Below are positions 40,908 through 63,724 of a stretch of DNA of 64,000 bases, in pieces; positions within the stretch are counted from its first letter, which is position 1, and every line of letters begins with the position of its first letter. A program made the position numbers and the translations under genes. The stretch is from Marsupella aquatica (lineage: Eukaryota; Plantae; Marchantiophyta): contig OZ316899.1 in the NCBI GenBank assembly GCA_973895155.1, positions 6,699,241 through 6,763,240 of the forward strand. The letters are read 5' to 3'. The notes below the pieces were generated by a model that saw only the letters and a list, made by a program, of their open reading frames with translations, did no database searches and had not been told where the DNA came from.

Positions 40908-41868
40908 ATGGGAAGGAACACCAGTGAGGGAGGGGTAAGGATCGATCGCAAGGAATGGTGGCTCATTTGCAAGCACAAACTAAGCAAACGACTACGGGAG
41001 GCCAACTATTGTCCGCTGCTCAGGCAAGCACTCAAGGTGGAAGCAAATACCGACAATCAACTCAAGAAGGGTATGAGCAACGTCAATCAAGCTGCTCATT
41101 TTTGGGGATGCCTATTAGAACGGGCAACTGAGTACATTGGGACCTACGAGGACGAAGAATTGGAGAGAGCCGCTTGAGAATGGCAGGAGCTGGCTCGACT
41201 ATGGGAGCTGCAGAAGTCTACCTTCTTAGGAGGAGAACTCATCACGGCTGAATTCCTGTGGACGCCTACTACCGATGAACTTGACAATCTTTTGTTTTGT
41301 GAGAACAAAATAGTCGGCATCCGGGAAGCCATCAACCGCTGCAACGACATACACTGGGAGTTGAAGGGTAGCACGGAGGGGTGGACAAAGGCAACCGTGC
41401 TAGGAGAAACATCCACGGTAGCCGCTATGAAGAGGAAAGGGAACATCAATGAAGAGACCACCCCTGCGAAGAGAACAAGGTCGGCGGCACCAAGGAAGCC
41501 AGCCAAGCAAGGGAGCAGGAGGCAGGAAGAAGCCAAAGAAGAGGAGGTCAACCCCATCAATGTCGTTCCGACAAGAGATGACACCTGGAAAGGCTGGGCG
41601 GCGACCCTCCCCGAGGAAGTGCAATTACACTTTGCACGTGAAGAGGATGCATGCTTTATGGCTATGCAGACTCAGAAGTACTAAGGCTTCATGGCCGGAT
41701 CCGGCTTGGAAGCCTTTGTGAAGTTACCATGGCTGAAGCCGGAGGTGCCGAATTCAGACTTATTAGAATTTGTGGGATCCTGGGAGCCCGAGTCCAATTC
41801 CACAAGGGTGTATGGGAAGGATTTCTATCTCACTCCCCAAGTGATTGCCGAAGCGTTTGGCTTACCGA
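40908..41868 (+). pseudogene. Accessory PMD-like ORF, 5' part (split by the CACTA)
   Basis: ORFs at 40908, 41292 and 41691 share a frame, with stops at 41175 and 41682; ...GLEAFVKLPW...LTPQVIAEAFGLP continues in frame after 63302. Confidence 0.7.
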
Positions 41869-41897
41869 CACTAGTAGAAACCGGGGCAATTTAGACC
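41869..41897 (+). repeat. CACTA left TIR
   Basis: CACTAGTAGAAACCGGGGCAATTTAGACC. Confidence 0.93.
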
Positions 41898-42119
41898 AAA
41901 CCTTATAGGACTAAGGCCACTAAGTCCTTTTTTGCAACTTCAAATGACTCAAAACCATTGCACCGGTTCACATGAACACTACAAAAGACTGTGAGTGCTT
42001 TTTGGTTTAGGATAAGACTATCAAAAGTTTCCACGTACCCTAGTTTGTGAAAGGGTGAACACTCTCACACATGATGGTTGTAGGGTTTAGTTGTCAACTT
42101 TAATTTGATAATGGCCATA

Positions 42120-42470
42120 TGGGGGGACTTTACGTCCCGCTATATTGAACACGTACAAACTCAGTAAATGTCTAAATGCCCTAATGTCTCATATACTCCA
42201 TAGTGGGTTTAGGGGGGGTTTACGTCTCAAGGGTGGGCCGGTTATATGTGAAGGGTGTGGGGGGTCACCACTAAAGGGGGTTTAGGGGGGTTTATATGTC
42301 AAGGGTGAGTCGGTTTGGATACAACTTGGGGGTGGGGGTCAATAAAGGGGATTTATATCTCAAGGGTGTGCCGGTTATATGTCAAGGGTGTGGGGGGTCA
42401 CTAAATGGGGTTTAGGGGGGTTTATATGTCAAGCGTGGGGGGGGGGGGGGTTACATCTTCACGGGGTGAG
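42120..42470 (+). repeat. G-rich degenerate tandem repeats (GGGTTTAGGGGGG..TTATATGTCAAGGGTG)
   Basis: Five or six degenerate units with long G-runs and three TTTAGGG cores. Confidence 0.75.
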
Positions 42471-45094
42471 GGGCTCATGCTTCACATTTAGAGTCGTTGT
42501 GGTCAACTTCACACCCCAACGGTAAGGGCCTTCTTACCCTAATCAAGTTTAAGGGCGTGGGTTAACGCTTAACTTGTGGGCACGGGAGAATCTCATTGAT
42601 TACTTGGTGGCCTAAGCAAGGGGGTGGGGTCCTGGGTCGGGCGTTTGGGGTTTTCCAAAGGGTGCTGGGCTTCACCAACATCCCATTCTATTCAAGTTTG
42701 CCAAGCCAAGAACCGGTGTGCACGCATACCCAAGATTTTTGGGCTAGCATGATCCCGCTTTATTGAAGTTTTCCAAGCCAAGAAAAATCAGTAACATATC
42801 CAAGATGGCCATGCAGTAACACTTTGTAGTGGTGTCTCACTTTGGGTGACACTCAACGGCTCACTCAAACGGTAAGGCTCCCCTTAATGACTTAAGTCCC
42901 CTAATTTGGTAAAGAGGCACTAAACTTCACTTTGGGAGTGACTTTGGAGTGTTCGGGCCATCGTCATTGGACTTAGAACGTGAGGGGTCCAAGGTTCGGG
43001 GTTTTACGTAGGGTTCTTTTTCATGTTGCCCACTTTTGCGATGATTGCAGACTTCCCTTCCCGCGCGTAATGTGATGGTAGGGCGAAGAGGGTTGTGCTG
43101 GTAGGGCGAAAAAGGTTGTGGCTGCGAAAGGGCAATGTGTAGCACAACGGCAACATTGTCAAGGGCAGTCCTGAGTGCTTACATTTTCAGTGAGTTGCAG
43201 TCCGGGAGGAGCTGTGATCTGGGGACTGAGGCGCTGAGGGTTTAGCTGAGGGGAGGAGTTGTGCGCCATTGCGGTTGCGGACCAAAGCTTGTGTGGTGAG
43301 ACAGTGGTGGGAGTTTGGTGGGAGGAGAGCTAAGGTTCCAAGTTTGACTAATCCACAAGTGACCAACCTGCTGCTGCGGAAGGTGGACCTGCATGCTCCT
43401 GCGGAAGGTGGACTACGGAAGGAAATCGCTGAGGAAGGCGATCCATGCGGAAGGCGATTGCTGCGAAAGGTGGACTGTAGTGGCTCCTTAAGCTTGCGGA
43501 GGCATTGCAAAGACAGTCTACTCACAGTGGAGTTGTGCTCGCTGCTCATCGATTGGAAGCTGATTGGGCTGCTCCATCTTCAAGCTGTACGCGCAACTTT
43601 CAGGTGACCTTCTTGAGCGCTGATTCATACACTCCATTGTTTGAGCTAGACTTTCCACTACCATTTCTTCTTCATAGCTACGATGACCACTGCATTGCCT
43701 TACTCTGTTCATTGCAGTAGCACAACATTGCATGTCCATCACGGGTTTTTCTTTAAGGAATCGCGGAATGACTGGATCTAAAGCTTGCAGTCTTGACTCA
43801 GAACGAGGTTAAACCACCTTTGCAACTTGTCGCTGGCCCTTAGACGCAGAATGCTCCGCTGTGATATTGCCTCCAACTTTTCTAGTGCCGTCTAGGCAAT
43901 TAGACTGCTTTTGAGAAAACTGCCCTTCTTAAAAGTGAGCAATACTAATAAATCCCGGTAGGCGCAGAGCTGGGCGGAGCTGCGGGTACTGAGGGAGCTG
44001 GGTGTGAGGGTTGGTTATGATGGCCGTGGACCTACCGTGGGCTATGGTGGAACACTCTATTGTCTATGATGATTCTGAATCTGCTTGAACCGCGAGTGGA
44101 TGTGCTTTAAGGCAAACTCGTCAGAGAAATTAGAATGGGGGGATGGAGCTATGAGTGCTTAGGTTGTGGCATTTTTGAGATTGTCAAGAGTAATCTGTGA
44201 TCTCATTTCTAAATGGTTTGAGTTTTTTCTGATGTGCACAGGAATCGGGCTGAGGAAAGCTTTTCGGAAGAAGATTTCTGCCAGGTCTACGCCTGTAATC
44301 CTTTGTCTATTGGTCGCTGTCATCTGCATTTTTTTAGGGACCGTCCACAGTTGCGGTGGGAGTGGATAGTGCTGGTCACCTGTTCAGTAGGTGCAAGGTG
44401 AGAGGGTGGAGAAGACCTGCGCTGCTCAGAATAGAAGTGGCGAGGTTGAGGGGAGCACCCGGGGGAGCAACTGCAAGCTTACCATCTTCAGAGTGGGGAT
44501 TTTCTTGGGGATTTCTGCTAAACTGCTCTGGCTTTCTTCTCGGAGGTAAGCTACTCCGGACTGTCACTTAGCGAGTTGGTCGCGCTACTGGAAGTACTAC
44601 CACTTTTACTATAACGCCAACCTCAGTGCTTTTTATAGAATGCTTTGTTGTTCTTCTACTCGGCATGGCATCATCTTGATTGCCCGTCGCGCTGTGACCA
44701 GCAATGGAAAGCGTAGACCCTTGCTAGTCAAAAAGCTGCGAGGTCTGATTTATGTCTTGCTGGAGTTTTGTTCCTCTATGTGCTTTGTTGTGTTAGCTTT
44801 GTTTGTTGTGATCTGTCTTACCCTACTGAGTACTAGTTTTACACTCTGCGATCCGACTTCATTCCCTACAAATAAATGGACATGACACTGTCTTGCTGGA
44901 GTTTTGGTGGTCTAGCTCTGTGCTTTGTTTGCTGTGATTGGTCTTACCCTGTTGAGTACTATGGTAATGGTAATGGTAATGGTAATGTATTATAAGCTCC
45001 GGGACCATGAAAGTCAAAGGAGCTGCCACAAAAAGTAAAGTACAATGCAATCAAAGAAAAGAGCAACCAAAAGAGATTGCTCAGAAGAGGACAA

Positions 45095-48000
45095 CTATGT
45101 CCTCAAAGAAACTATGGACCTAGAGAGCCTTGAAAGATTTTCCAAACCTATTCTCCTTTCCCTATCCACCGCAAAGATATATCTTCCAAGTTGCTGAGGG
45201 GGCAGACCAAACAATGCATACAAATCTTTCACCAAGATTTGAGATGCCATCCTAACCTCCTCATAAAACTTGCAAGCAATGAATACATGATATTCATTCT
45301 CTATACTAGAGCTATCACATAGTTGACAAACCCTCTTTTTCCTGTCAATATCCTTCCATCTCCCTTGTTCTACTTCAAGGTGGTGTGAGCTTAGTCTATA
45401 CTGAGCAATAAGTTGTCTAAGTTGTACTGAGATAGTGCTAGATAAGTATTCTTGTTCTCGATATTTCTTCATGGGGTTCACATCTCTCATGTAATATTGC
45501 TGCCGTGGGCTAGGTTCATGCCAAAGTTTGTGCAAAGCCTTTTGCTCAAGTTTTGCTCTTAGCTTGGTTGGGTGTGTGCCAATTCATGTTCAGGAAAATC
45601 CCAAGCATGGGCCCACCTGCACACATCTGCATACCACCCTTTAGCTGAAGATGAGCGCAAGGCATGAAAAGGAAATCTGTTTTCCTCCAACTCTCTTACA
45701 CGCATGATGTATTTGAGTGTGTGGAAGAGTGCCTCCACCTCCAAAGGAAACAAGCCTGCCTCTGCAAGTGTAAGTGCATATGGGGTTTGTGACTTGATCC
45801 CAAGCTCCATCTCAAGAAATAGCTTTTGCAGCCCCTCAATCTGTTGCCACCCAGATTTAGACACACCTGCTCCCCAAATTGGTGCTCCATAAAGAATGAC
45901 TGGTTTCACCAAAGCTCCAAAGTGATGTTTCCTTAACCTCCAAGTGTGTAGACCAGCTCTTTTGTATTTGTTCATGAATGCATAAAAAGCTCTGTACCCA
46001 TTGGCAGCCCTAGATTTTACACATGAGGCCCAACTCAAGTTTTGAGAGAACTCCACCCCAAGGTATTTGTAGGTCCTCACAAATTCCACCAGATTCCCTT
46101 GGAAGTAGAGCTCTGGATTTTGTCGTGTGCCAATGCCCAAACACTTGGTCTTCTTGAGGTTGACTACCATCCTTGTTGCTTGACAAAACTCCTCCAAGGC
46201 AGTGAGATGTCTTTGCAAAGCTTCTTGAGCATGAGCAAGTAGGACCACATCATCTGCAAATATAAGAAGTTGGAGGACAAACCTACCCAATTGAGTGCCA
46301 ACTCCACCATGCTCCTCCAAAATGTTGTGTAGCTGATCAATGAAGATGCCAAAGAGAGTTGGTGAGAGAGGACAACCTTGGATCACCCCAAGAGTGCTCC
46401 AGATTTCTTCAGAGGTTTCCTTTGAAAGTTTGATGCGCACTTCTTGGTACAATTTAGAAACAGCCAACCTGAGCTCTTCAGGCACTTCCAACTCCACCAT
46501 CCTATCCCAAAGCTTGGATCGGGAAACTTTGTCAAAGGCCTTGGAGAAGTCCACAAACAAGCAAAATAATGGTTTATGTGGAGATTTGGCCTTTTCACAC
46601 AACACCCTCAAGCAGAGAATGTGATCCATAGTGCTGAATTCTCTCCTAAAACCTGCTTGTGAAGGTGCCCTTTTCATCTCACTCTCCAACCAAGAGCTTA
46701 ATCTGGCTTCAAGTAGTCCTCCCAAAACTTTAGCAAAAGTATTGCCTACCATGATGGTTCTGTAGTTGTGCACATCGTCCTTGTTGCCTGCCTTGAAGAT
46801 AGGCACCACTCTTCTGGTCATCCAAGCTTTAGGTAAACCTAAAGCCATTGCTTGATTCAGCTCATGCACCAAGTTTGTTAGTAAAGAGGGTCCTCCCCAC
46901 AAAAGAAGCTCCAAGTTCAGGCCCAACAGATCTTTAGCTTTCCCATGTTGCATGTGGGAAAGATGCACCTTCACCTCCCTCTCTGTAAACTGAATGGTGT
47001 CCCCAAGGGGCAAAGGCATGCCACTAGCATCTGGAAAGAAATACAAGGATGTGACATAGGTTACCAGGTCCTGGTGATCCAAGGGGGGAGTAGTCTTGCC
47101 TGATTGCATTCTCCCCCAAAAACGTTTTGGATGTTTGATGAACTCCTCACATAGTGATTGTTGATGACTCTTCAAGAAGCACCTCTTCTTGTGTTTGATG
47201 AAGTTCTTGTACATAGTGAATGCCAAAAGTCTCTTTTCCCCTGAATGTGATCTTACTTGCATCCTTGCTCTAGCACAATCCTCGTCAAACCAAGCCTTCA
47301 TGTTTTGCTTTCTAGGGGGTTTGGTGGAGAAAGTAGAGGCTGCTGCTTGTGCTATGACTTCTGAGAGCTCAATCTGATCATCCAGGGTATGGAGAAGATG
47401 TTCAAAGTTGGCTTTGAAGATGACTTCTCTATCAGGGTCTAGAAACAGAGGTTTGGGTACTGGCTTTCTATGCACTTTGTTTGGGATTGTGGTCAGGTCA
47501 AGATGGAACAACAAAGGCAAGTGTGAAGACTCTGGTTGTTGATCAAGTATTTGAAAGTCAACCACTCTAGTGGCAGAGGTAGGTGAGGCAAGAAGGTAAT
47601 CAATGGTACTACATCCTTGTTTAGATCTAAAAGTGTAACCAGATGATTGGGGAAATCTCTCAAGCCCATTCAATATTCTTAGATTACAAGAAGCTCCCAA
47701 ATGCAAAAAGTGACGTGTCATGTCATTTGTTCTGGTGTCAAGAGCCTCTCTCACCCAAGGTATCTATTCACTACATGATGACCAAGGTAAAGTTCCTAAG
47801 TCCTCACTTTCAGTAAATTGTTCATTAGATACCCTGGCATTAAAGTCCCCCACTATCCATGTCTCCCCTAGTGGTGATATATCATGAATGACTTGGATTA
47901 ACCTATGAAATGGATAATGTGCATCAGCAATTCCCATCTTATAGACATTCATATTAAGGGGAGCAAAGTAGGTGACAATCAGAAATGATGGAGTACCTCT

Positions 48001-48297
48001 GGTATGAAGTCTCACCACCATGAACTGCTTGCTGGGATCTTCATGTTCAATAGAGGTGATGTGTTGAAGTTGATTCTTGGTGTAGACAGCAATGCCTCCA
48101 AACCCTCTTCCCCGTGTGGTCTTCTTCTCATTGAAGATGGATTGTATGCAAGTAAAGCCTTTAATGCTAGGTAGAGCATTTCCCTCATATTCCCAAGTCT
48201 CCGTGAAAAGCAAGATGTCAAAATTCTCAAACAAAGGTTCCCCTCCAATTGCTGTTTCTATGGAAAGTCCTGAAACATTCCATGCCATGACTCTCAA
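45095..48297 (-). pseudogene. LINE ORF2: APE endonuclease, RT, C-terminal Zn finger
   Basis: MAWNVSGL, TETW, GDFNAR, STIDY; QAGFR, FVDFSKAFD, QGCPLSP, FADD, YKYLG; RLSSHHLEVEQGRW..RVCQLC..ENEYH..C. TAG at 47764 and a frameshift near 45560. Confidence 0.9.
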
Positions 48298-48309
48298 GGT
48301 CCCAATCCA

Positions 48310-48891
48310 TCATTTAGAAACAACTCTCTTCTTATTGGTAACAACAGCTTGTCCATTGCGCAAGTAGGCTACCAATCCTTGGTCTTTGGCTACCCTCACC
48401 TTCTCAAGCTCAATTTTCCTTGCTTGGACTTGTGTGGGAGTCAGATCATCATCCAACCAAATCCTTAGCCCTTTAAGCATGCTCCTGTTAGCCATCACTC
48501 TAGCTTTCTCGGATTCAGCTGCAAACTTCACCAAGATTGGACGTGGAAGGTCCCCCTTCCTTTGCCCAATCCTATATGCTTGCAAAATGATAGGGTCATG
48601 CACTTTCATCTGAGATTGGAAGAATGAAATTGCTACCTTCTTGGTGTCTTCCTTCTCCTCCTCAACAAGGCCTGATATTTTGCAGTTGCTGACTCTTGCA
48701 TGCTGGTTCTTGTGTTCTTCCTCTAGTGCTCTCCTCTCCTCCTCCTTGGCTTGGACAAATTCCATATGTGATTGTTTTGCAGCCTGTGCAAAGGTTTTGA
48801 GCTTCTCCTCAATCTCCCCTACAGCCTCATGTATCACTGATTTCTTTGGGCACATACTCTTCTCCATGTCTCCAAAACACGATGCAAGCAA
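48310..48891 (-). CDS. LINE ORF1 (coiled coil + RRM-like)
   Basis: NCKISGLVEEEKED...YRIG...PRPILVKF...IWLDDDLT; true start uncertain. Confidence 0.75.
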   Translation of the reverse strand: MLASCFGDMEKSMCPKKSVIHEAVGEIEEKLKTFAQAAKQSHMEFVQAKEEERRALEEEHKNQHARVSNCKISGLVEEEKEDTKKVAISFFQSQMKVHDPIILQAYRIGQRKGDLPRPILVKFAAESEKARVMANRSMLKGLRIWLDDDLTPTQVQARKIELEKVRVAKDQGLVAYLRNGQAVVTNKKRVVSK

Positions 48892-51086
48892 TGAGAGTTG
48901 CTTACCATTCTCCTGAGTTTGAGATCGAGTTTTGCACCCTGTGATCCGACTTCATTGCCCCGGTGATTTTCTCTATCTCTATCCTCTACATTCAGCTTGC
49001 GGGTGGGTTTGTACTACCACTTTTACTATACGGTTCATCTCAGTGCCTTTTATGGAATGCTTTCTTGTTCTTCTACTCGGCATGGCATCATCCTGATTGC
49101 CCGTCGCTGTGACCAGCAACGGAAAGCGTAGACTCACGTTTGGATTCAGAGTCTAATCCAGAGTGTAAGGCTCTGAGCAGACCGTAATAGGAAGCCTGCC
49201 TGATTCTCTAGCCGATCTGATAGAGAGCCATCCCTGCAAAACCTGTTTGAGTGTGTTCCAGTGTTCTAGTGTTCAGCTTTTGAGTGGGCTTTTCGATGTT
49301 GTCCTCTGTCCTTTTGTGGGAAGTGGAAATTCCAAGCTAAGACATGAATTGCCTTTGATTTTGGCTTCAACGTAAGATCTTCATTGCTTCTTCCAAAGCT
49401 GTCGTGGCCGAGGTTCCCATTCAGCTCTGTTTCTCCATTTTTGTAGCCCAATGTGAAGCTCTGAACCTACCTTCTGCTGCACATTTCTCATGTGAGAGTT
49501 TAGCTTATTGTTTGTCTTCTGTCTTTTGTTTGTTATCATTCACGTCCATGTTTCTTCCTATCAGGTTTGTTTGACTTGTCCTAGTTTGGGCTTTCCTTCT
49601 ACTGCATTTGGTGGTTTGATTTGCCCTGCGCTGTGAGCACGCGTACAGTCTTGCAAAATTCCTTTAGAAATCTGGTCAGGTTTATTTGTGAGACAAGCAA
49701 ATTGCCTTGTTACATCTGGTTCTCTATTACATGCCTTGTTGTCCCGTCCACTGTTTCCTGGAATTTTGTTTAAGTCGTCCAGAAGAGAATGGTGATTTCT
49801 TCTTCAATCAAACAAAACCCCACCCAACCACCACCCAAGAACGTGGGGTGCGCGCTTCTTAATCCTCCTCAAACTGGCCCCAAGTCTACTGAAACCCCAT
49901 ATATTACCCACCGGCACCATATATCCTGCTATGTTTGATCCTTTGGTCCCTTTTCTTTAAGTTGCTCTTCGCATTGTTGCTTCATGTGGCCTCAGCATAG
50001 CAGTTTGTATTTGTTGTTTCTTGTCCATGTATAATTTCACATTGACTGACAAGTCTGTATTTCTGCCCGGCCATTTTAGATTTGGAGAGGAGACAGGGAA
50101 GGTTACCATTGTTCATTGTGCTTTTTTTCTCAACTGCTCAGTCGTTTGCTTTGCTATTCTTGCCAGTATGTTGTTGTCGGAGCTTGTAACTGCTAAGTCT
50201 GTTAATTGGTATTAAATTTTGGTATTTCATTTCATTGGTAGTACTTTGTTTCTCTGTTGTGCTGCATTGAATGCTCCTGTTGATTGTTGTGTGTTCCGTC
50301 ATAGTTCCTGCTTTTAGATATTCGTTTGTAGAACAATTTCCGATAACACAATTTTGGTATTACTTCAATCCAAAATTCTATGTAAAAAGACATGAAGTAG
50401 CCTTTGTGCTTAATTGCTATGTAGCATCTGACTTCATTTGATTTTGCTACTGCCTGAAATTCATATCTCTTGCTTGAGTCCCACTTTGCTGGAGTTTTGT
50501 TGCTCTCTGTGCTTTGTTGTGCACATCAGGAGCGCAGGCATCTGAACACCATGATCAGATCAGATCAGATCAGATCAGATCATGTCAGTATAGTGTGGAT
50601 AGCAAGCGAAGGGTGTGTGCTGCATTTTGATATGGACAACCAAGTGTAGAGTTGACTCTTTGTGAATGTTTTAGCCTGTCTTGCCTTGAACTGGGCCATG
50701 GATGAATTGAGCTTGTGAGCAGTTTTTTTTCTTTCCCATCTTCCTGAAGCTTTGTCTGCTTTCTGCCACCTCAGTGGAGGTTCACTTGCAGAACACGACA
50801 ACCAGTGAGTTTTCTCTTTGCTGCAACCTGCAAGGTGAGACTTTCGATCTTTCTGGATGAAAAAACAGGATCCAAATATGATTTATGTACATGTCCATAG
50901 GGAACATGGTTTTATATACATGCTCTTGGTCTTAGGAACTCAGCATGAAATATGTAGTTGGAACCAATTTAGTGAGTGGGAACTGATAAGTGCAGGTTGG
51001 TTGCTGTGGGCAAGGCAAGTCGACCTCTTGCTCGCCTTGCTCATCAAAGGACGTGAACAGAGGACATCACAACAAAAGCAACACTT

Positions 51087-51536
51087 ATGGTGAGGACCCG
51101 CAACGCTGAACATGTGCGGTTTGCACGCAAGGCAGAGATGTTGCACCTTGAGTATGTCAGACTGGGGATCCTTCCAGCCCAGTCTGCATGGTACTTTGAG
51201 TACTCTGTTCTTGCCAGGAACAACTACAGCCGGCCTCTACCTGCTTCAGTACCCTTCCCGACATCCTTGGTATTTGTGTCTCTTGTACATGACCCACCAC
51301 AAATTAGGTGCCAAGGGTGTGTGCATAGTTGCCAATATGACTGTCCTGCCTGTAGGGCTTCTGGCCCAGAGTTGGATGACCGTTCTCTTGGATGTCGGTT
51401 TTTGCACAGAGCACAATGTATCATCTGGAACCACTCGCCATCCTGCAGTGTGCCTGGCGATGTCACTTGTCCTGCCCTCCCAGACCCCAACACCGGTGCC
51501 TTTGGTGTCTACACATGTTTGGATCACACGCTCTAG
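51087..51536 (+). CDS. CACTA cargo ORF A: small Cys/His-rich putative Zn-binding protein (149 aa), family unknown
   Basis: ATG start MVRTR; CQGCVHSCQYDCPAC...CRFLHRAQC..H..C...C...CLDH; co-oriented with the other cargo ORFs. Confidence 0.45.
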   Translation: MVRTRNAEHVRFARKAEMLHLEYVRLGILPAQSAWYFEYSVLARNNYSRPLPASVPFPTSLVFVSLVHDPPQIRCQGCVHSCQYDCPACRASGPELDDRSLGCRFLHRAQCIIWNHSPSCSVPGDVTCPALPDPNTGAFGVYTCLDHTL

Positions 51537-52202
51537 AGGACAACTTGTCTCACCGCATGCACAGACCAGAGACCATTGACCTATAACTTAACACTCTGAC
51601 TTGAACAGAGAGGATATTTACTTAAAATTTTGAATTATGAGCAATTTTGGGTCCAGGGTTTAGGGTCAACAGTACATAACTTATCCTATTATGGCTGCAC
51701 TAAGTACAATATCCTAATTTAAGAGGCTAGCAAGCTCACTTAAAAGTCTCCTTTCAAAGACTGGAATTAATGGGCCATGTGATAACCTGGAAAAAGTGAT
51801 TTATGCCTAACTTATTTGTCTCATTCACTATCATAGCCTATTTAGGATGTATAAATTACAACCCTGATCACACTGCTTGATACCAATCCTGTTCAAAAAA
51901 TGCCTGTTTTACATGTCACGACTATTGTATGTGATTCAAATGCATTAAATCTTGTTGCAGATCTCCTTTGGTGAATCATAGCCACAAAATTGAGGTGTAG
52001 GTGGAGCTATTGTACTAGGGGATCAGTTTTCAGAGTGGGCTCAACAAACCAAAAAGTATGTCTACTCTGCACATGTGTGTGAACATTCATTGCAGTAGCA
52101 ATTGCCACTCTAGTCTATATGCTACACTGTACTTTTTGTACATTGCTAAATTGTAATGTCTGTGCACTCTGCTAAATTGTACTATCTGTCTCATGCGTAG
52201 GC

Positions 52203-52882
52203 ATGGCACGCCCTAAAATCCGAGCCAAGAAGCGGGGGACAGAGGTGAGCAACACAGGTGTAGTTGGGCCAGATGGTAGTAACTTCTCTGCAAGTCAGAT
52301 TTTCCAGAAGGCAGCTCATTGTTGTGCCATTTGTGACGATGGTGGGGGCTTAGCCATATGTGAGGGCCCTTGCATGAGGCATTTCCACTCAACCCGGAGT
52401 CTGACCTTGCTGCAGAAAACAACTGTCCAGGGGTGGGCCTCCCGTCAGCACACCAGGGAGGCTGGATGTGCACTGATTGTTTGGAGAAGCAGGCTAAGTG
52501 TGCACAATGTGGGAAGTTGGGGTCTTATGAGGGCTCTGTTGATGCTCCACCACTTGTTAGGAAATGCCCTGACAGATATTGTGTGAGGTTCTTTTGTTTT
52601 TCATGTTTGCCCGATCTTGCCACAGTTTGCCCACTTCATAAGTGCAAGGCATGTGGTCAGCACGATGAAGATTTCTGGGTGGACATAGTCCACTGTGTTA
52701 GGTGTCCCACCATGTGGCACTTTCATTGTTTGAAGGAGCGTCAAGCAGAAGGCTATGCTTGTGACAGACACATCTATGATCACTCTGCACATGGTGTTGA
52801 TCGATGGATCTTCTATTGTCATCGCCATGCCATAGATCCTACTTTGCACACTCCCATTAGAGATCACATTTCTTGGCTTTGA
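52203..52882 (+). CDS. CACTA cargo ORF B: stand-alone EDM2-like composite PHD-finger protein (~226 aa), with a 1-nt frameshift at ~52388
   Basis: NLS-like MARPKIRAKKR; CAICDDGGGLAICEGPCMRHFH / LNPE..WMCTDC..CAQCGKLGS..C..C..CPLHKCKAC..CVRCPTMWHFHCL..IFYCHRHAIDPTLHTPIRDHI. This follows the EDM2 pattern CAICDNGG..CEG.C.RSFH...CPLHKC...IYC..H.ID..L.TP.RDH. A 5'-UTR GT-AG intron at 52056-52200 ends 2 nt before the ATG. Confidence 0.85.
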
Positions 52883-53477
52883 ACCTGAATAATGTACATG
52901 CATAGTGCACCTGATGTGGATACCTTGGAGATTGCAGACATTCCAATTTTGAGAAGGACCTCTGTAGGAGAGGATGCTTAGGCAACAAGTACCCTAAGTT
53001 CATTACTTGTTCCTGGGTACATGCCTTCAAAAACTCCCCTTAAGCCTTCTAGGACCTTTTTTAACTCTGCAATCATTTTGATCACGACTTACATGGCACT
53101 GCTTAAATTAAATCAGGACTTCTCATTATGAGCATATAAGTTACAAGGCTATTTAATTTGCGAAAATTCCCTTAAAGTGTACCAACATTTTGTATTCTCA
53201 TTGAATGTCTGCCCATTTACAACATCTGTATGTGGCATCACAAAACAATTGCACTTGTCACCTTCAATATTGTGAAGGCACATATTCAAACTATGAGGTG
53301 CATGCTTGTAGGTGTCTAGTACGTTTGTCCCAATATTTCTCCCGTTTGGAATTGGAGCAGAGACTCACCAGACGACTGGACTTGACCAAGTTATAAACGC
53401 AGCATTTTAAGGGCCCTCCGATTATCAGGTGAACGCATTATCTTCCGGTCTGCAGTGATTAGGTGGCCCGTGTGTAC

Positions 53478-54326
53478 ATGGCCTCTAGGAAACGTACAAA
53501 GGTTGACCACCCGCCTATGTTGGCTGGAATCAAAGCCATTTTGATTCCTGGCCACTATGGGTTCACCCAAGTGAGTTGGCCAATCGTACAAAAACGATTT
53601 TCAGAGTTCCATGGGACTGAAGTCAAGGACATCACTCCACAGACTACACATGTTGTTGCGGGGACATGGCTGGATGTGATGAACAAGTGGTCATGGTCCT
53701 TCGTTGATTCTGCCATTACCAACCAAGGTCTAAAAGTAGTTGAAGTCTCTTGGCTGACTGATTCTGTTAAACATAGGTGTGTACAGAGTACTGAGCAATA
53801 TGAGTTGTGGGAGAGTGAGGAGGCCACTGCAGAGGCTTTGGCTGAAAAGGAAGCCTATGAAGCAGCGGCAGAGAAACCCAACTTTGCTTCTGTCCAATAT
53901 GGACCTGTTGTCAACATAGGACACCATCCTATGCGTGCAGATGCTATATTGAATGAGCATGGCAAGGAGAGAAATACCATTATGAAGGGGTTCAGTGTGG
54001 TATTTGCAGAAGAAGGAATTGGGGAGACTAAGTGCAGACTGTACAAGTCCATAGTTGTTGAGCTAGGTGGGACAGTGGAAGAGAGTCTAACAGAAACCTC
54101 CACTCATGTTGTAGGTCTGTCATACATGAAGATATGCAGAAAATTCTTTAAGACAATAGTGCGTGATTTTGTCATGAACAACAATCTTTGGGTGCTTTCC
54201 CCTGATTGGCTTCTGGAATCAGCAGCTAGAGGGAAGCGACAGAATGCTTGGGACTTTGATATTTTTGAGGCCTGGCCCTCCAAGATTCAGCGGAGATGTA
54301 TGCTTAGCAAAGGTGGGAGAGAGTGA
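53478..54326 (+). CDS. CACTA cargo ORF C: tandem BRCT protein (282 aa), Pol lambda BRCT-like
   Basis: NLS-like MASRKRTK; BRCT1 ..G.EVKDITPQTTHVVA...VVEVSWLTDSV..Q..EQYEL; BRCT2 KGFSVVF..G..K..Y..IVVELGGTVEESLTETSTHVV...VLSPDWLLES. Open frame. Confidence 0.85.
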   Translation: MASRKRTKVDHPPMLAGIKAILIPGHYGFTQVSWPIVQKRFSEFHGTEVKDITPQTTHVVAGTWLDVMNKWSWSFVDSAITNQGLKVVEVSWLTDSVKHRCVQSTEQYELWESEEATAEALAEKEAYEAAAEKPNFASVQYGPVVNIGHHPMRADAILNEHGKERNTIMKGFSVVFAEEGIGETKCRLYKSIVVELGGTVEESLTETSTHVVGLSYMKICRKFFKTIVRDFVMNNNLWVLSPDWLLESAARGKRQNAWDFDIFEAWPSKIQRRCMLSKGGRE

Positions 54327-54502
54327 GGAGTAGGAGTCCCTCATATTTTTGTATAAATCACAATTTTGTAATAAATATGATCCTTGAACTAACTCATCTT
54401 GTCATGGTTGGTCGCAGTTGAAGTGATTGTTGTTTCCTGCTGCGTGGGGTGTGACTGTGAATCTACTTGCTGGGCTCTGTTTGGCTGAAGACTTTGGTGG
54501 GT

Positions 54503-55036
54503 ATGCTGCCTCTCCCAGACCGTCAGGCCCTATGTAGGGTCCTCCTACGGGTTGCATCGTGCATGGCTACTGCTTGGGCTTACTTGTGTGGATTGGTAAC
54601 CAGACAGAGTGTAGCTCCATCCGAGATAATGCCTGCAGACCTTGGATGTGTTGTGAATGCTGTGGTGAATGAGGATGCACAGTCGGAAGAGGACATTTAC
54701 TTTTCAGCAGATGAGTTAGACAAGCACGATGCTGTAGGTGGTTCCTTGTTGCCTGATTTGGCAGATGATATAGTTCTTACACATGTCTGGCCGAGGGTTC
54801 TTGTGGTGTCTGGCGCACAAGATATCTGCAAATATAGACTAATTAGTACCCAGTGGAGGGACTTGGTAGCAACATGTGCACCATGGAGGGCACTGCTGCC
54901 ACTGCTTGTAGGCATGGATCGAAGACCACCATGGCATGAGCAGGGTTTAGACCTTGATGACTTAATGTACATGCCTGAGTACCTCAGGGCTGAGTGGCAT
55001 CGACAACAGGATTGGTATCCGTATTTGATGTGGTAG
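54503..55036 (+). CDS. CACTA cargo ORF D: F-box-only protein (~177 aa)
   Basis: SLLPDLADDIVLTHVWPRV....CKYRLISTQWRDLV (~54746-54886) fits the plant F-box consensus LLPGLPDDI...R.V.K.WR.LV; no kelch or LRR domain follows. Confidence 0.65.
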   Translation: MLPLPDRQALCRVLLRVASCMATAWAYLCGLVTRQSVAPSEIMPADLGCVVNAVVNEDAQSEEDIYFSADELDKHDAVGGSLLPDLADDIVLTHVWPRVLVVSGAQDICKYRLISTQWRDLVATCAPWRALLPLLVGMDRRPPWHEQGLDLDDLMYMPEYLRAEWHRQQDWYPYLMW

Positions 55037-55354
55037 TAAGATGAGGACATCTCACACCGGTCTCGCACCTGGCACCTGTGTCTATGACTATACATGATTG
55101 GACTCTGATATGGTCATGGATGTACGTGTAGAGGCAGTACATGTGAGGACAGCGGAGGAGTTGACACCCTCAAACATTTAGGAATTTTGTCTCATTCACT
55201 TGAGAATAGGTACATGACTCAGGCACCTATATTTTTTGTTTTTTTGGAACGTTACGTATTTTGGCAAGTACAGTCAGGGGTGAAATCCTTAACAGGAAGT
55301 GTATTTTTCACTTGCATAATAAAATGACAGGGTGCTGAGTGCGTGTGTATAGTG

Positions 55355-58300
55355 ATGGCTCCAAGGTTGCCTCTTCACAACCCATTTAGGATTAGGCATC
55401 ATGATTCTAAATTGTGGATGCGTGAACAAGCCCGGGCCGCCCAAGGTAGGAGTAGGAGGATGAGATGCCCATGCACACAGTGCCAAGGATTCAAGTCGTT
55501 GAGTTTGAACACTGTGCACCTTCACCTGCTGCGGCATGAAAGGCACCCTCGGTGGAGGGTTTGGAATGTACCAGCAGAAGAAGACTCCTCTGATGAAGAG
55601 TGGAGAGCTGACTTTGTGGATTCTAATACAGCTAGGCGTAGAGACTACGTAGAGCAGGACATAGACTGTGCAGAGGATGGTCCTGGGGTCCAACATGAGA
55701 ACATGGATGACCAAGATGGAGATGTAGAGGCAGTCACTGAGGACGGTGGGATGGATGTCCCAAGAATGGTTCAAGAGATTTTTGAAGACCTTGATGCTTT
55801 TTACGACACAGTGGAATCAGAAGAGGACAATGAACCGCAGCCACACATTGGCGATGGCCAAGCTGAACCTGACTTTGACATTGGGGAAGGTGCAGCAGAG
55901 AGGGAGTGGGTGTTTGGGGGCCCAAAACACATCAAAGAAGCTTGCATTCCTATCTACGAGGGGTCGAACTGCTCCAAGCTGGGTTTTGTCGTGTTGTTGT
56001 TGAACATCTGTGGCAATCACAATGTTCCCAATATATTTGTGACAGAGTTGTTGACCTTCTTGCGCCGAAATGTGTTACCAGATGGTAATTCAATTCCAAA
56101 AAATATGTACGAGGCTAGGAAATTGATGTCTAACCTTGGGCTAAACTATGTGTCTATTGACGCATGCCCTGATGGGTGTGTTCTCTTTCGCAAAGAGCAT
56201 GCAGATAAATTGACATGCCCTCATTGTGGTAAGCACAGGTACAAGAATGTAGGGAAATGTACACACCCTGCCAAGGTTCTTCGTCATTTTCCTCTCATTC
56301 CTAGACTACAACGTCTGTTTAGATGCCCTGCCATTTCCAAGCTGATGACATGGACTTTTGATAACAAGAGCAGTGATGGCCTGCAGCGTCACATTGGAGA
56401 TTCCAACCATTGGAAATTTGTTGATGAGAGGTGGCCACAGTTTGCTGCAGAGAAGCGGAACTTTCGATTTGGTCTATCACTGGATGGAGTAAACCCATTT
56501 GGAGACAAAAACAACCGTTATTCATGTTGGCCGGTTACGCTGCTAAATTACAACCTTCCCCCATGGATGACTACAAAGAGGTTTTTTGTCATGATGGTGC
56601 TGTTAATCCCTGGACCAGCTTCTGTGACCGAGCAATTCATAGATATCATGTTGGCTCCAGCAGTGGAAGAGTGGAAGACTTTGTGGATAGAAGGGGTGTT
56701 AACCCATGATGTTCTGAAGGGGCTTCTTCGACCCAGCCCCTTTAGACTGCATGCAATTTGTTTGCTGGATATAGCAGATTACCCAGGCCATGGCATCATA
56801 TCTGGACGAGTGACAAAGGGCTATGTGGGGTGCACACCATGTGGGAAAAATGTGACAAGTGAGTGGTCGCATGCCCTGCACAGTATGAAATTTCAGGGGC
56901 ATAGAAGGTATCTGCCTGTTGATCATCCTTACAGGCACACACGGTCTCAAATTGCACACTTCAACAACAAAACAGAGCTTCGTGGCCCACCACAGAGGGT
57001 CACCAGAGAGCAAGTCCTGAGGTGGGCAGCCAGGAAGGCTGATTGGGACAAGAGAAGTGCCACTGATCGAGAACCTGAGGATCCAGTGGTGAAACACGGT
57101 GTGAAAAGACAGACCTTGATGGACTTGGAGTTGGAGTACTGGAGGGTAATGTACTTAGCCTCCAGCCCCTGTATGATTGCAATTTTAGATTGGAGCAATG
57201 GTGGATTGATGTTGGTTACAATCCTCCTCTGTGGTTAATTAGTGTTTCTGTTGTTGAATTCTTTGCTTTGTGGAGTGCAGGAATTCGAGCCCAGCAAACA
57301 CAATGTGGACGTCATGCACATTGAGAAAAATATTTGTGAGAGCTTGCTGAAGTTCTTGTCGGGTGAGAAAGATACAGGAGCAGTTCGAGCTGATATGCAA
57401 CAGAAGGGGATTCGCCCTCACCTTTGGTTGAAGCCCCATGCAAGCAATCCCAATGTACTTCTCAAGTTCCAAGCTCCCTATGTGTGCACACAGGATGAAT
57501 GGAAGACATTCTTGTATAGATTGAGCTGTCTGAAAGTGCCCTCTGGCTATGCTGGTGCCTTCAAGAAGCATATTACAAAGAATAAACTTGGCAGTATGAA
57601 AACACATGACTACCATGTGTTGATGCAGCACATTCTGCCCCTATGCCTCAGAGGTCTCATGCAGAAACCAGTCCGTAATGTCATTCTTCGACTGTGCAAT
57701 GTATTTTGCCGTATATGTGTGAAAGTGTGGGATCCCCAAGGATTGGAGCAGTTGAAGCAGGATGCTGCTTATGTCCTCTGTGACTTGGAGATATACTTCC
57801 CCCCTGCTTTCTTTGATGTTATGACTCATCTCCTAATCCATGTGGTAGAAGAGCTAGGGCAGTATGGGCCAGTCAGTACCAGATGGATGTACCCTATGGA
57901 GCGATACATGAAGTTGTTGAAAGGTCATGTGAGAACATACTACAGGCCAGAGGCTTCCATGGCATTGGGGTACATTAAGGATGAGACGTTGGGATTCCTA
58001 ACAGAGTACATGGCTGGGTCTGGTGAAGCTATGACAAGAGTTTGGAAATCTGGTGAAGATGATGGAGTGAGTGGCGAGGTTGTTGAAGGTGTGGGACGTG
58101 CTGTTCAGCTGCCTGTTGCGATTCGAGACAAGGCTCATTCATATGTGCTGGCAAACACAGAGCCTATGCAACCATGGTGGAGGTGAGTGATTGAATTGAC
58201 TTGCCTTTGTTGTGATGCTTCTTGTCTGTTCCAAGGGTGATCTTAGGTTGTCATGTGTTGTTTAGACCTAACTATGCCTGTACCTCATATTGCAGGGAAT

Positions 58301-59055
58301 ATGATATGCAAAAAGCTGCACACTCTGGGCAGCAGGATCCCTTCCCACAGTTCGAGCAGTGGATTCGGGTGACAATTCGAGAGCATAGTAGACATCACCC
58401 AGATATGGAGAAGGATTTGTATCTTCTATCTGTGCCACCACGATTGTCTATTCTGACCTACAAACGGATGAGAGCTTATGGAAATCATTATCGAGTGAGG
58501 GATGAGCAGGGTGACCATTGTGTATCATATGATTGTGGTTTGATTTCTGTGTTTGAGCAGAGAACCTTTGAAGAACAGAGGGGGTGGATGAAGATGGGTT
58601 ACGTGGGGGAGTTGACCGACATTTGGGTGTTGAATTATGATAACACAAGTGTCCCAGTGATATTGATGAAGGGATCATGGGTGAAATCAGAGTGGCAGAG
58701 ACCAAGGGCCACCATGAAGCGTGATCATGATGGGTTCTTGTTGGCCAATTTTAGGTCCAGAGTACCAGAATGGTCTGAGCCTTTTGTTTTCCCTAGCCAA
58801 GTTGAACAGGCTTTCTTTGCAGATGTGGAGGAGTCACATGGCTGGAGGGTGGTATGCCATAGCCAAGCACGGAACAGGCGGATGGATGGAAGTAAAGTAG
58901 AGTTCAGTTTGGATGACCATGCTACATTCGAGCATCCTAGTCATGAGACTGTACTTCCAACTCGGGCAGGGACTGACTACATCCCCTTAACATTGAGAGA
59001 GACATATGATGAACCTGGGCAAATGGAATATGATGAGGTTGATGATTTGCAATAG
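55355..59055 (+). CDS. CACTA transposase Tnp2/TnpD, 3 exons (55355-57145, 57281-58182, 58296-59055), apparently intact
   Basis: CPCTQC N-terminal domain; IDACPDGC..CPHCG; LSLDGVNPF, YNLPPW, DYPG; HNVDVMHIEKN; MKTHDYH; FFDVMTHL, RWMYPMERYM; EPFVFPSQVEQ. GT-AG introns 57146-57280 (phase 0) and 58183-58295 (phase 2) keep the frame. Confidence 0.93.
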
Positions 59056-59232: not shown

Positions 59233-62200
59233 ATGGGGGAAGAGGGTGATGACATGGAGACAGACATGGGGCTTGGAGAGTGGGGTGAAGAGGAAAGATT
59301 GGATATGGATGGAGACCCAGATGCAGGGGGCTCACAGAAAAATGCACTTGTGCAAGATGCACAGGGCCCTCATCAAGTCCCAGGTAGGTGGGCAGCTAGA
59401 GAGAAATCACATAATCCATACCCTAGAAGGAGCCAGAGTTATTGGCAAGGGACGCCTGATAATTATGATGATGACTATGATGGAGCAGAAGATGGATGGG
59501 ATGAATATGAACACCCAGAGCGTGGTAGAGACGGGTACAGAGGGCAATGGAAAGGTGAGGAGGATGATTGGACAAGTAAGTGCCTTGTGCTAGTGATTTT
59601 GTGATGGTAGTAGAGATTTAGCTCAATATGCACTTATCTGATGTGTAGCTAGGGCAAAGAGTTTATCTTACAGGTCCATGAGTGTGGCATGTACCTGTTG
59701 GTATGCAGACTCTGATTGGGACAATCACGAAAACAACAAAGGCCATCCACGTTCAGATAGGAGGCAATCATTCACAGGCGGGAGAAACGGCCCTAATTCA
59801 TCAAGACAAAGCAATAGGACAGGTGGTCCAAAACCATCTATGCGCCAAGGGAGAGGTAACTTGGTCATTGCAGAATTGCTCTGAAGTCCACTGTATATTT
59901 GGCAGCAGGATTTATGATTCATACTACCTAATGGATCCTGTAAATGTGCAGGGACTCCAGGGAGGTTTGGACAATGCAATCCAGGCCGTGGGGGGAGATC
60001 AGGCCGTGGAGGGACCCCAGGCCGTGGGGGGACACCAGGCCGTGGAGGGACACCTAGTAGCGCTTCAGGGAGTACCAAGGCAGGAGACAGTAACAAATTT
60101 GGTAAAGTAGAAGTGAATTCCGATGGTTGGATAACTCCCACATGTGATGGTAAGAACCGTTGGCATTCTGACCTAAGAGGAGAAGTATTGCATTGATTAG
60201 ATTTGAGCATTACAGAGTTTAGGAGTCAGAACAAAGCTGATTGGGCTGCTATCTGCAAGGACATTCTTGAACGGTGGGACTATGTTGGTAATGATGGTAA
60301 GGGCCCAGTTGAAGATTGCATATCAGATTATGCAATGAGGATTTTGAAACAAGAGAGGCATAGGTTGAAAAGGATGTGGATAGACAATGGTTCTAACAGG
60401 AGAATGCCACCACCCCCATCATTGGAATTGGATCAATGGACACGGTTAATCAAAGGGTTCATGTCAGAGGCTGGACAGAGCAAAAGTGAATTGATGTCAA
60501 ATGCTCGAGGCAAAGTGTCACAGGCTGGGAGAGGAAGTTATGCTCCAGTGAAAGAACAATTGGTAAGGCAGTGACATGCCTGATAGTAAGCCTCAAACTT
60601 ATCATCTTGCTACCATTATTACATTTTCATTGACAATCAACACTTGGTTTCATTCATATGTATGTTGATGTGGACTGCAGAAGAAATTGACAGGTGAAGA
60701 ACCATCAGCACAAGAAGTGAGAGAGGAGTTCATGAAACAAAGGAGTGAGGTGACAAGTGTGACTTCCAAACTGGTGATTATGTTGTAATTCTGTATGTTC
60801 TGTGACTATTTGCCCTTGAGCATCAGAAAGAATTGTAGTAGGAAGTAAGCAACCAGTTCTTGGGGACAATTATCTGAGATATGTAAGCTATGTTATGACA
60901 GGGAACTGTTACAACTCTCACAGAGATGTGTGAACGGTTGAAGTCATTAGAGTGTGGACTCCCTCGAGTGGAAAGTAAATTGGCTGATCGTTTGGATATT
61001 GTGGAGGCATCTGTAGCGAACCTTCTTGCATCAGTGGAATCTAATTTCAAGCTTGTGATTGAAAAATTGGGTGGTTCCCAACCAAACAATGAGGGCAACA
61101 TTGTACAAAGTGTGCCCTTGTTAACAAAAAAGGGAATTGGCAAATTTGACACAGGTATGGAAATGACACCGGCCCATTGTTCATTGTGTCCTATGTTCAA
61201 ATGTTAGAAGTAAGTTTTCATGAATTGAGTGAATGGTTTTAATGCAGGAAGAGTGGAGGCAGAGAAGGACCCTGTAATCAGTAAGTGAATGGTTTGAATG
61301 CAGGAAGAGTGGAGGCAGAGAAGGACCCTGTAATCAGTAAGCAGAATGGCAAAAAGGTTGCTGAGACAGGTAACCTGCTATGATCCAGTACATTACATTT
61401 GAAAAGTGCATGGAGTTTTGTGAAGCTTAAGCCCGGTTGGAGGTAATCTTTTCTGTAAGAACTGGTTGGATCAACTGGGATCTGAAGTGACATCATGATT
61501 GATGTATCAGGTGATTCAAAGAGCAATGAAAAAGATGTGCCCAGTGCCTCAGTGACCATAGCCAAGGAGGTATCAGGTAAGCTGATGCTTTAAATTCCTC
61601 TCCTACCATTGTTGAGAAACACTTCAGTGGTTAATAGATTGAACCTGAATATTGTGGTGTGTTTATTGATCAGCAGAAGCAGACATGGAGGATATGGCAA
61701 TGGTAAAGAAGGGGAAGAAGGCTGTTCGTATCGGTAAGGAGATAGTGACAACTTTGTGGTTGGTGACATGTACATGGCGCACATGTGATGAGTGATTCAC
61801 TTATGTTGGACAATGCACTGAATTGTAGTTGATGCAGAGTTGACAGACTCTCAACCAAGTGGGAGCAGGGTGAAGCGACGTCGAAACTTGGGAGCAACAT
61901 TGGATGCAAGTAAGATTGTAGATGCTTCAATTGAAGCAAGTACAATGTTGGCAGATACTGAGATGATATCGCAGGGAGATCCTGCTATACAATTGGAAGT
62001 GTCAAATATGGATGCAGATTCTTTGAAGAAGAGTGTATCCAATTCTCGATCACCAGCACAAAACACTCATGCCAAAGTCATGACTCGCAACCAAGGTATG
62101 AATAATGTCATGTATAAGCCACCCAGGAAAGCCAAGAAAAGCAGCCAGGGTAAGGTGGAGGTGATAACCACAGCAGAGCCAGTCCATAATCTTCTATCAT

Positions 62201-62430
62201 GGGAGGATGACTCGCAGGTATGTGTGGGTACAGGCATTTTGCGACCGGATCATGCTAAATTCCATGGCAAAGTGGTCCTGGATGACCATGTAGTAGTGTT
62301 GTTGACTACAGTGATTGTATCTGATTGTAATTTGCCATTTCCGAATAGAGACGATGATCCACCTCAGGAAATAATTGCACATGCAGTAGGATCTCTTGTG
62401 CTCTGGCCATCAGAGTGTGTTAGTCTGTAG
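59233..62430 (+). CDS. TnpA/Tnp1-like multi-exon gene, with an in-frame TGA at 60194
   Basis: Series of GT-AG-bounded exons; acidic N-terminus; GRGGTP repeats; ERHRLKRMW..PPP..DQWTRLI..S..NAR; C-terminus VGTG..FHG...V..V...LPFP....AVGSLVLWP. Exon structure approximate. Confidence 0.75.
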
Positions 62431-62939: not shown

Positions 62940-63269
62940 GAAAGACTTGTACATACCCCACAAAGTGTCTACTTTAGTCGTTTTATAAACCCACAAAGTA
63001 TACTTAAAGACTACCCTCCATAACCTTTTGAGTCGTTCCCAACGACTCACCATCGCAGTCCATAAAAGACTGAAAAAGACTCACCAAACCTACCCACACA
63101 AAGACTACAATAGACTGAAAATCCAGTCTATAAAACGACTTATAAACCAGTTCTATAAAGGACTCAGTTGATTATAGTAACAAAACATACGACTCATAGT
63201 CCTATAAAGGACTGGAGTCCTTCCCAGTCATTTCCAAGTCCTATACGGTACTGAATAGTTGTTTTATGG
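62940..63269. repeat. CACTA right subterminal repeats (GACT/AGTC-core motifs such as AAAGACT and TATAAAGGGACT)
   Basis: Dense GACT motifs in both orientations; similar motifs at 41900-42020. Confidence 0.7.
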
Positions 63270-63299
63270 GGTCTAAATACCCCCCAGTTTCTACTAGTG
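63270..63299 (-). repeat. CACTA right TIR
   Basis: Reverse complement CACTAGTAGAAACTGGGGGGTATTTAGACC. Confidence 0.93.
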
Positions 63300-63724
63300 C
63301 GATGGGCAATAAGACCAAAGTTGATACCAGGAAGACCTTGCCTGACAAGGAGTTCCGGTCGTTCCCAGGGCCATCAACAAAGAATGGCTTCTTCTAGAAC
63401 ACCTGCACCAACCCGCACATTGGGGAGATGATTGATTTCTTGCGGGTAACCATGCATTGCAACTTGCCGAGGCCAGAGATTGGCAAGGCACAAGTTTACC
63501 TGGCGGAGAGGCCAGACCCCAGCTGGGACTACAACGGATGCCTCCTCACCCAATTGAAGAAAATCTTGAAGGAGGAACAGCAGGTGATCGGCAAGGGAAG
63601 CGTGTCCCGGCTTGGCTATCATATGCCGTTGTTGTGCCGCTATGCTCGAAGTCAGATATTCGCCCCGGTACTTCCCTTGCAGGCAAGAGCACCAGAGAGG
63701 TTCCGGAATAGAGGCCGGCAATAG
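63300..63724 (+). pseudogene. Accessory PMD-like ORF, 3' part
   Basis: After removing the CACTA and one CGA: GLP-MGNKTKVDTRKTLPDKEFRSFPGPSTKNGFF*NTCTNPHIGEMIDFLRVTM...SWDYNGCLL. Confidence 0.7.

Follow-up and report, generated by a model that had tools for sequence, protein, structure and literature searches.

The window analysed here, that is, the whole stretch of 64,000 nucleotides (nt) of contig OZ316899.1 from Marsupella aquatica (Marchantiophyta; assembly GCA_973895155.1, positions 6,699,241 to 6,763,240 of the forward strand), contains a 21.4-kb CACTA transposon in which a block of accessory open reading frames (ORFs A to D, 51087-55036) lies upstream of the transposase gene. The terminus CACTAGTAGAAAC has exactly two matches in the window, inverted to each other at 41869 (+) and 63299 (-), and repeat analysis delimits arms of 18 nt that are 94% complementary. 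Since this inverted pair is flanked by CGA on either side, it defines a CACTA transposon with the 3-nt target site duplication (TSD) typical of the superfamily, and the intact terminal inverted repeats (TIRs) and TSD described in a first-pass annotation of the locus are thus borne out. With its CACTA-type TIRs, 3-bp TSD and Tnp2-type transposase, the element belongs fully to the CACTA / En-Spm superfamily. The same annotation had regarded the block as a cassette of four compact genes, encoding a Zn-finger protein, an EDM2-like PHD reader, a tandem BRCT protein and an F-box protein, that are selected cargo of the element.

Genes of the accessory block

In ORF B, three NSD-type PHD models of Pfam match in order, and all of them score below their cut-offs in the window and in the relatives P0003 and P0004. 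Pfam matches nothing other than PHD in this family of 220-226 residues; as for the transposase exons, the two pieces of ORF B in the window were searched one by one. The split arises as the window copy runs through two frames (52203-52586 and 52370-52882), with one base missing at 52387/52388 in the alignment to L001 and L002 and an extra C present in the contigs of other family copies. The compact ORF of the first-pass annotation is thus found continuous in the relatives (226 amino acids in P0003, 220 in P0004), but not in the window copy itself. The basic N-terminus of ORF B, MARPKIRAKKRG, is kept in P0003 and that of ORF C, MASRKRTKV, in its relative P0001, in agreement with the nuclear localization signal-like N-termini claimed for two of the ORFs. 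In a sequence search of the PDB, the first finger of ORF B matches AIRE PHD1 best (E 9e-4), which is also the sole match below E 0.001. Judged by these features, ORF B appears to encode a small, nuclear-looking protein made solely of a triple PHD module of the NSD/EDM2 type.

The likeness to EDM2 is confined to this module. EDM2 has 2.5 atypical PHD repeats, binds H3K9me2 and contains ELP (N6-adenine methyltransferase-like), PGR and acidic regions (PMC7529245). ORF B appears to share the atypical multi-PHD module of the NSD/EDM2 type, a likeness drawn from Pfam models, but with ~226 residues it consists of the PHD module only and lacks the ELP, PGR and acidic domains. As such, the EDM2-like PHD reader of the first-pass annotation is reduced to a PHD triad of the NSD/EDM2 type, and ORF B is not an EDM2 family member. 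In the distant orthologue on the metagenome contig L005 (2372-3046), Tyr takes the place of the second Cys in the first zinc site (CAIY vs CAIC elsewhere); the ORF is otherwise intact and exceeds the Pfam cut-offs for the two later NSD-type PHD modules. A further PHD-profile scan of metagenome contigs found no additional relatives.

ORF C is intact and matches the BRCT domain of Pfam in two stretches (E 3.6e-13). In its AlphaFold2 model (nine family members; mean predicted local distance difference test score, pLDDT, 77.6; predicted template modelling score, pTM, 0.46), the BRCT folds reach a pLDDT of ~90, and the chain is laid out as BRCT1 (~19-110), a helix (114-135), a disordered stretch (134-164) and BRCT2 (~167-266), with an inter-BRCT linker of ~55 residues that is partly helical and partly disordered. 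The modelled BRCT2 superposes on the BRCT domains of PARP4 and XRCC1 (Z 15-16, root mean square deviation, rmsd, 1.4-1.9 Å), and tandem-BRCT structures (ligase IV, Rad4/TopBP1, BRCA1, MCPH1) match both domains of ORF C only at an rmsd of 13-23 Å. The top Foldseek E-values belong to the tandem BRCT of ligase IV, the sequence identity to the structural matches is 14-19%, and the best sequence match in the PDB has an E-value of 0.14. All of the nearest structural relatives are break-repair scaffolds. With XRCC1, DNA ligase IV, PARP4, REV1, TopBP1/Rad4 and BRCA1, ORF C has its two BRCT folds in common, and with ligase IV also a long inter-BRCT linker; it differs from these repair proteins in having no catalytic or other domain.

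The intact ORF D is 50% identical to P0002 over nearly its full length, with matching start and end, conservation being measured at the protein level. Against a cut-off of 20.5 bits, the F-box model of Pfam (PF00646) reaches 13.3 bits (E 0.08) for ORF D of the window and 19.3 bits (E 0.0011) for P0002, and the F-box protein claimed earlier is reduced to a weakly F-box-like one. The AlphaFold2 model of ORF D was unusable (mean pLDDT 35), and a profile search of the PDB returned nothing but a chance match. Contigs of X3 and X5 skip 43 nt at 54667-54709 within ORF D, which would shift the frame. An intron was considered for this skip and rejected, as no GT..AG is possible within the alignment ambiguity, and it looks like a deletion subfamily.

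For ORF A, the status as a gene could not be supported. No Pfam domain was found in any frame and no relative in the metagenome contigs, the distant element on L005 has no counterpart, and all three forward frames are open across the ORF. Its codon-usage score of 0.18 bit per codon is at the level of real genes, but also at that of some stop-free controls. The DNA of this stretch is present in many family copies. We conclude that ORF A is probably not a gene, and the Zn-finger protein of the first-pass annotation is not upheld. Contigs of X2 and X3 also contain a 774-nt deletion variant (51230-52003, with TCA at the joint), which lacks two-thirds of ORF A, at its 3' side, and the greater part of the spacer that leads to ORF B.

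Family copies, gene order and selection

In the four sequencing runs compared, contigs that map to 50800-56700 number 2182 in X2, 5755 in X3, 266 in X5 and 22 in X8 and are 80% to >99% alike, where the contigs are of coded origin, one run may be the source sample and depth does not equal copy number. Those of X2, X3 and X5 cover all 30 bins of this stretch, and the cassette stretch occurs under several organism labels (with whole-block cover in at least three) and in nine studies. Just as the transposase does, the complete block forms part of a family of many copies, a large number of them nearly identical, and with thousands of contigs at hand the cargo is not private to one copy. Among the 12 best-supported family indels listed, nine are frame-breaking and all of these lie between the ORFs; the remaining three are the frame-restoring +C at 52387 and two 3-nt indels in the transposase.

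More distant relatives preserve the arrangement of the genes. The 13.4-kb metagenome contig L005 encodes on one strand the PHD protein, the BRCT protein, Tnp2, DUF4218, a DUF4216-type ORF and then homologues of the downstream ORFs of the window, an arrangement that agrees with the window in both order and strand. The identity between the two is 45-57% for the transposase, 38-49% for the PHD protein and 27% for the BRCT protein. The order PHD-BRCT-transposase is hence kept at 45-57% transposase identity, whereas ORFs A and D are absent in L005. The BRCT gene also lies immediately upstream of the Tnp2 transposase in L006/L007 and L008/L009, the PHD gene precedes the BRCT gene in the contig of P0005, and every contig of sufficient length has a Tnp2 transposase downstream in the same orientation; the contigs L001-L004 show the gene only, without a transposase. 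Transcripts were considered as the identity of these Logan contigs and rejected, as L006 retains a transposase intron with in-frame read-through, which indicates DNA or unspliced RNA.

Among the window, L001 and L002, the ratio of nonsynonymous to synonymous substitution (dN/dS) of the PHD gene is 0.23-0.39 at a dS of 0.42-0.50, with every Cys and His kept and with the window ORF B read with one unknown base inserted at the break. The PHD ORF is 82-84% identical and nearly gapless, compared to 59-66% identity and numerous gaps in the sequence on either side of it. The reading frame is open in each of the six BRCT genes for which DNA was available. For most BRCT pairs, including those with the window, synonymous sites are saturated and dN/dS is not computable; the single closer pair gives 0.48. 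With ratios below 1, both the PHD and the BRCT gene are, to judge from their substitution pattern, under purifying selection, and the sequence comparison shows that they evolve faster than the transposase. The same holds for accessory proteins of transposable elements (TEs) in Arabidopsis, which evolve faster than the core enzymes (PMC13547354).

Close relatives of the block are rare in protein databases. A word-based search of 5.8 billion proteins returned one or two relatives per ORF, and no near-identical host-like proteins to ORFs B and C were found in 1.84 billion representatives or in the PDB. The BRCT profile matches 24 proteins at E<=0.001 among the 1.84 billion representatives, and since this double-BRCT family is so narrow, it speaks against recent capture from a host.

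Transposase, element ends and surrounding sequence

The transposase gene contains the Pfam domains Transposase_21 (PF02992, E 1.3e-59), Transpos_assoc, DUF4218 and DUF4216, among them PF13960 at E 2e-27 and the weaker PF13952 and PF13963. Its two introns (57146-57280 and 58183-58295) are both bounded by GT..AG, as read from the sequence, and the gene is collinear with the transposases of L005 and L006. As intron 1 contains the sole in-frame stop and intron 2 explains the frame change, the gene appears to be open. Downstream of it, the ORF 60203-60574 is 38% identical to the L005 ORF in the same position, which in turn weakly matches Transposase_24 (PF03004, E 2e-4, below the cut-off). Directly after the transposase lies an acidic, Gly/Trp-rich ORF (59233-59604, +) with the motifs GEWGEE, DGWDEY and GQWKGEEDDW, which has the top codon-usage score of the whole element and no Pfam match, and which to judge from its composition looks like a GW/WG 'AGO-hook' sequence. 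An 18-nt tandem repeat of at least three units (D4) is found further downstream at 59981-60052.

At the ends of the element, the subterminal motif TATAGGACT occurs again at 63198-63206 and 63237-63245 (both -), which amounts to three matches against 0.28 expected by chance, and within the window it is confined to both element ends. A long interspersed nuclear element (LINE), which is absent from the first-pass description, is nested in the 5' part of the transposon. It is flanked by direct repeats of ~125 nt (44594-44718 and 49011-49133; 90-97% identical; D3, D14, also D8, D5), whose excess length and divergence speak against a LINE target duplication and which may represent a second, truncated LINE 5' end. 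Taken together, the window copy of the element is partly decayed, with a frameshifted PHD gene and a nested LINE in its 5' part, while the frames of its BRCT and F-box-like genes and of its transposase remain open.

The remaining window is TE-rich. It includes an unbroken Ty3/gypsy polyprotein ORF of 2021 amino acids at 7287-13352 (-; gag, zinc knuckle, reverse transcriptase, RNase H, integrase), which is possibly a young retrotransposon copy, and copia reverse transcriptase and gag pieces at 17981-21837.

Table 1. Features of the CACTA element, listed by position in the window.
Feature	Position	Strand	Description and basis
Left TSD copy	41866-41868	.	3 nt, CGA; read directly, same as right copy
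CACTA transposon	41869-63299		21.4 kb; window copy, plant genome
5' TIR	41869-41886	+	starts CACTAGTAGAAAC; exact-match and repeat analysis
Subterminal motif	41904-41912	+	TATAGGACT, 9 nt
Subterminal direct repeats	42197-42437	+	4 copies, period ~61-72 nt (families D1, D2)
Nested LINE	~45095-48891	-	ORF1-like, endonuclease, reverse transcriptase and zf-RVT pieces; RVT_1 E 2e-30, Exo_endo_phos E 2e-6
ORF A	51087-51536	+	Cys/His-rich, 149 amino acids; gene status unsupported
ORF B	52203-52882	+	stand-alone triple-PHD protein (NSD/EDM2-type PHD1, PHD, variant PHD), basic N-terminus; broken in window copy
ORF C	53478 (ATG)-54326	+	double-BRCT protein, 282 amino acids, intact; Pfam, AlphaFold2 model and relatives
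ORF D	54503 (ATG)-55036	+	177 amino acids, intact; hydrophobic N-terminal helix, conserved C-terminal half weakly matching F-box
TnpD-type (Tnp2) transposase gene	55355-59055	+	exons 55355-57145, 57281-58182, 58296-59055
Downstream region with putative TnpA-type exons	59233-62430	+	includes ORFs 60203-60574 and 61840-62430, both with a homologue in the equivalent position of L005
3' TIR	63282-63299	-	exact-match and repeat analysis
Right TSD copy	63300-63302	.	CGA; read directly

Possible roles of the accessory proteins

From our point of view, it is probable that the stretch 51087-55036 holds the accessory genes of a CACTA family of the autonomous type (En/Spm, Tnp2) and that its PHD and BRCT genes have long been components of this lineage, kept by selection; their products would assist the TnpD/TnpA transposition machinery as trans-acting cofactors. 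The PHD protein would read the state of the histone H3 tail and in this way tie cleavage or integration to chromatin state, as is the case for chromoviral chromodomains and the RAG2 PHD finger; alternatively, it might shield the element's own chromatin. The BRCT protein may link the double-strand breaks of cut-and-paste transposition to host repair proteins, a guess that is made because its nearest structural relatives are break-repair scaffolds, and it would probably not do so through the classic tandem phosphopeptide pocket. The F-box-like protein could serve as an adaptor to host SKP1. The claim of selected cargo, as opposed to random Pack-CACTA debris, can be kept for ORFs B and C and, less firmly, for ORF D, but not for ORF A.

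Several observations weigh against a working set of cofactors encoded by this block. The PHD gene of the window copy is, by its sequence, a pseudogene, given the 1-nt deletion relative to L001 and L002, the extra C elsewhere in the family and the continuous ORFs of the relatives. No run on record as RNA contains the cassette stretch, the dN/dS values of 0.23-0.48 come from few sequences of unidentified species in which part of the divergence may postdate insertion, and in the contigs of P0001 and P0002 the order BRCT, ORF D, transposase fits by gene sizes and spacing alone. ORF D rests on one protein-only relative and a Pfam match below threshold, and it was not found in L005, L006 and L008, the contigs of distant elements; its absence there points to a later addition in a closer clade, and this third gene may hence be a younger, clade-specific F-box-like one. 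Of the tandem BRCT protein claimed earlier, the two BRCT folds and their Pfam match stand, but the tight head-to-tail packing of a canonical tandem is not seen in the model, which is not final. In a weak alignment to BRCA1 (E 0.14), the phosphate-binding Ser is replaced by Tyr/Phe and the Lys by Ser, with Arg at the Lys position in half of the ORF C family. Compared to phosphopeptide readers of the BRCA1/MDC1 class, ORF C thus has two BRCT folds per chain as well, but in the model these are separated by the ~55-residue linker and not tightly packed. Since pocket residues are replaced in this weak alignment and the modelled packing is non-canonical, phosphopeptide reading by ORF C seems doubtful.

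A different interpretation, which we consider unlikely, is that of a counter-defence toolkit, in which the PHD protein would bind heterochromatic marks (H3K9me2) and counter silencing, as the ASI1-AIPP1-EDM2 complex and VANC do, the BRCT protein would direct repair and the F-box protein would bring host silencing factors to the SCF complex for degradation, or decoy them. Viral F-box-like suppressors such as polerovirus P0 target AGO1, which would fit such a scenario, as would the conservation and selection of the genes and the NSD/EDM2 type of the PHD triad. In addition, EDM2 binds H3K9me2 (PMC7529245), and with VANC transposon-encoded anti-silencing proteins do exist (PMC5735166, PMC10398659). 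However, the other EDM2 domains are absent from ORF B, the F-box match is sub-threshold and ORF D is missing from the older relatives. Further, AIRE PHD1, the only sequence match of the first PHD finger in the PDB below E 0.001, reads unmodified H3K4 and not H3K9me2, and where transposons carry histone readers, these have to date been linked mainly to targeting, as for chromoviral chromodomains and the RAG2 PHD finger, and not to anti-silencing. For the PHD protein, we would rate chromatin-guided targeting or gating above anti-silencing, since in most precedents a chromatin reader on a mobile element serves to tether recombination or to gate it, and the RAG2 PHD finger is one such reader. The MAGGY chromodomain (cited in 10.1101/2021.11.30.470311) provides another example. 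A narrower version, distinctly unlikely in our opinion, is a host-interface kit of three cooperating proteins in a land-plant CACTA lineage, in which the histone reader would place the transpososome on, or protect, a chromatin state, the double-BRCT protein would recruit host factors that mend excision gaps in the element's favour and the F-box-like protein would hand a silencing or repair factor of the host to SCF. If true, this kit would be a transposon-encoded counter-defence and repair-steering system, of which no description was found in the literature searched.

It is also conceivable that the block is cargo of the Pack-CACTA type, that is, fragments of host genes that are passively carried, decay and have no function for the element. 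CACTA elements do capture host sequence (PMC13317346), there is no support for ORF A as a gene, and the window copy has a frameshift in ORF B. Unlike Pack-CACTA, however, the element encodes its own transposase, the ORFs are complete with starts and stops kept in relatives, dN/dS amounts to 0.23-0.48, the same order is found beside transposases that are only ~45-57% identical, and the databases searched contain no close host-like protein from which exons could recently have been captured. For ORFs B and C this explanation is largely refuted, and for the block as a whole it has hardly any probability left. It is very improbable, too, that the genes are host genes, or genes domesticated from transposons, beside transposase remnants, in which case the selection would act at the level of the host. 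The relatives do stem from short contigs of unknown organisms, of which L001-L004 show nothing but the gene; yet in the window the genes lie inside intact TIRs and TSD, single runs contain very many near-identical and diverged copies, and wherever a contig is long enough the Tnp2 transposase follows on the same strand.

With maize En/Spm and plant CACTA elements, the window family shares the CACTA termini, the 3-nt TSD, subterminal repeats, a Tnp2/TnpD transposase with DUF4218 and DUF4216, and apparently a downstream TnpA-type region. Compared to En/Spm, it adds three stand-alone ORFs upstream of the transposase, encoding the PHD triad, the double BRCT and the F-box-like protein. CACTA elements joined with BRCT were not found in the literature searched, and PHD, BRCT and F-box go unmentioned both in the atlas of Arabidopsis TE products (PMC13547354) and in a review of gene capture (PMC13317346). 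Transposons that carry or are fused to PHD, Chromo or SET modules are already known, and across eukaryotes no reader domains accompany TE domains more frequently than PHD and Chromo; BRCT is not mentioned in this work (10.1101/2021.11.30.470311). In fungi, Kyakuja-Dileera-Zisupton / CACTA-related DNA transposons have a TET/JBP gene beside the transposase (PMC12730594). Like the chromatin-reader transposons, the window family has retained a chromatin-type module under selection. Its reader, however, is encoded by a small gene of its own and not as part of a fusion; this gene has a double-BRCT gene as its partner and belongs to a CACTA element of the land-plant type. VANC of VANDAL (Mutator-like) is similar as a lineage-specific accessory protein of a DNA transposon that acts in trans on its own family, a functional analogy only; it is, however, a sequence-specific DNA-binding anti-silencer (PMC5735166, PMC10398659), whereas the proteins of the window are histone-reader-like and BRCT-type modules.

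Overall, a role of the PHD and BRCT proteins as trans-acting cofactors would bear on the question of how DNA transposons handle host chromatin and their own double-strand breaks, about which little is known. Across deep divergence, a whole CACTA lineage has retained, under selection, one gene of the histone-reader type and one BRCT gene of the repair type, and it thereby offers two small, expressible proteins with which chromatin target choice, resistance to silencing and repair bias can be addressed. As a consequence for annotation, PHD and BRCT genes that stand alone in genomes of this kind may belong to transposons and not to the host.

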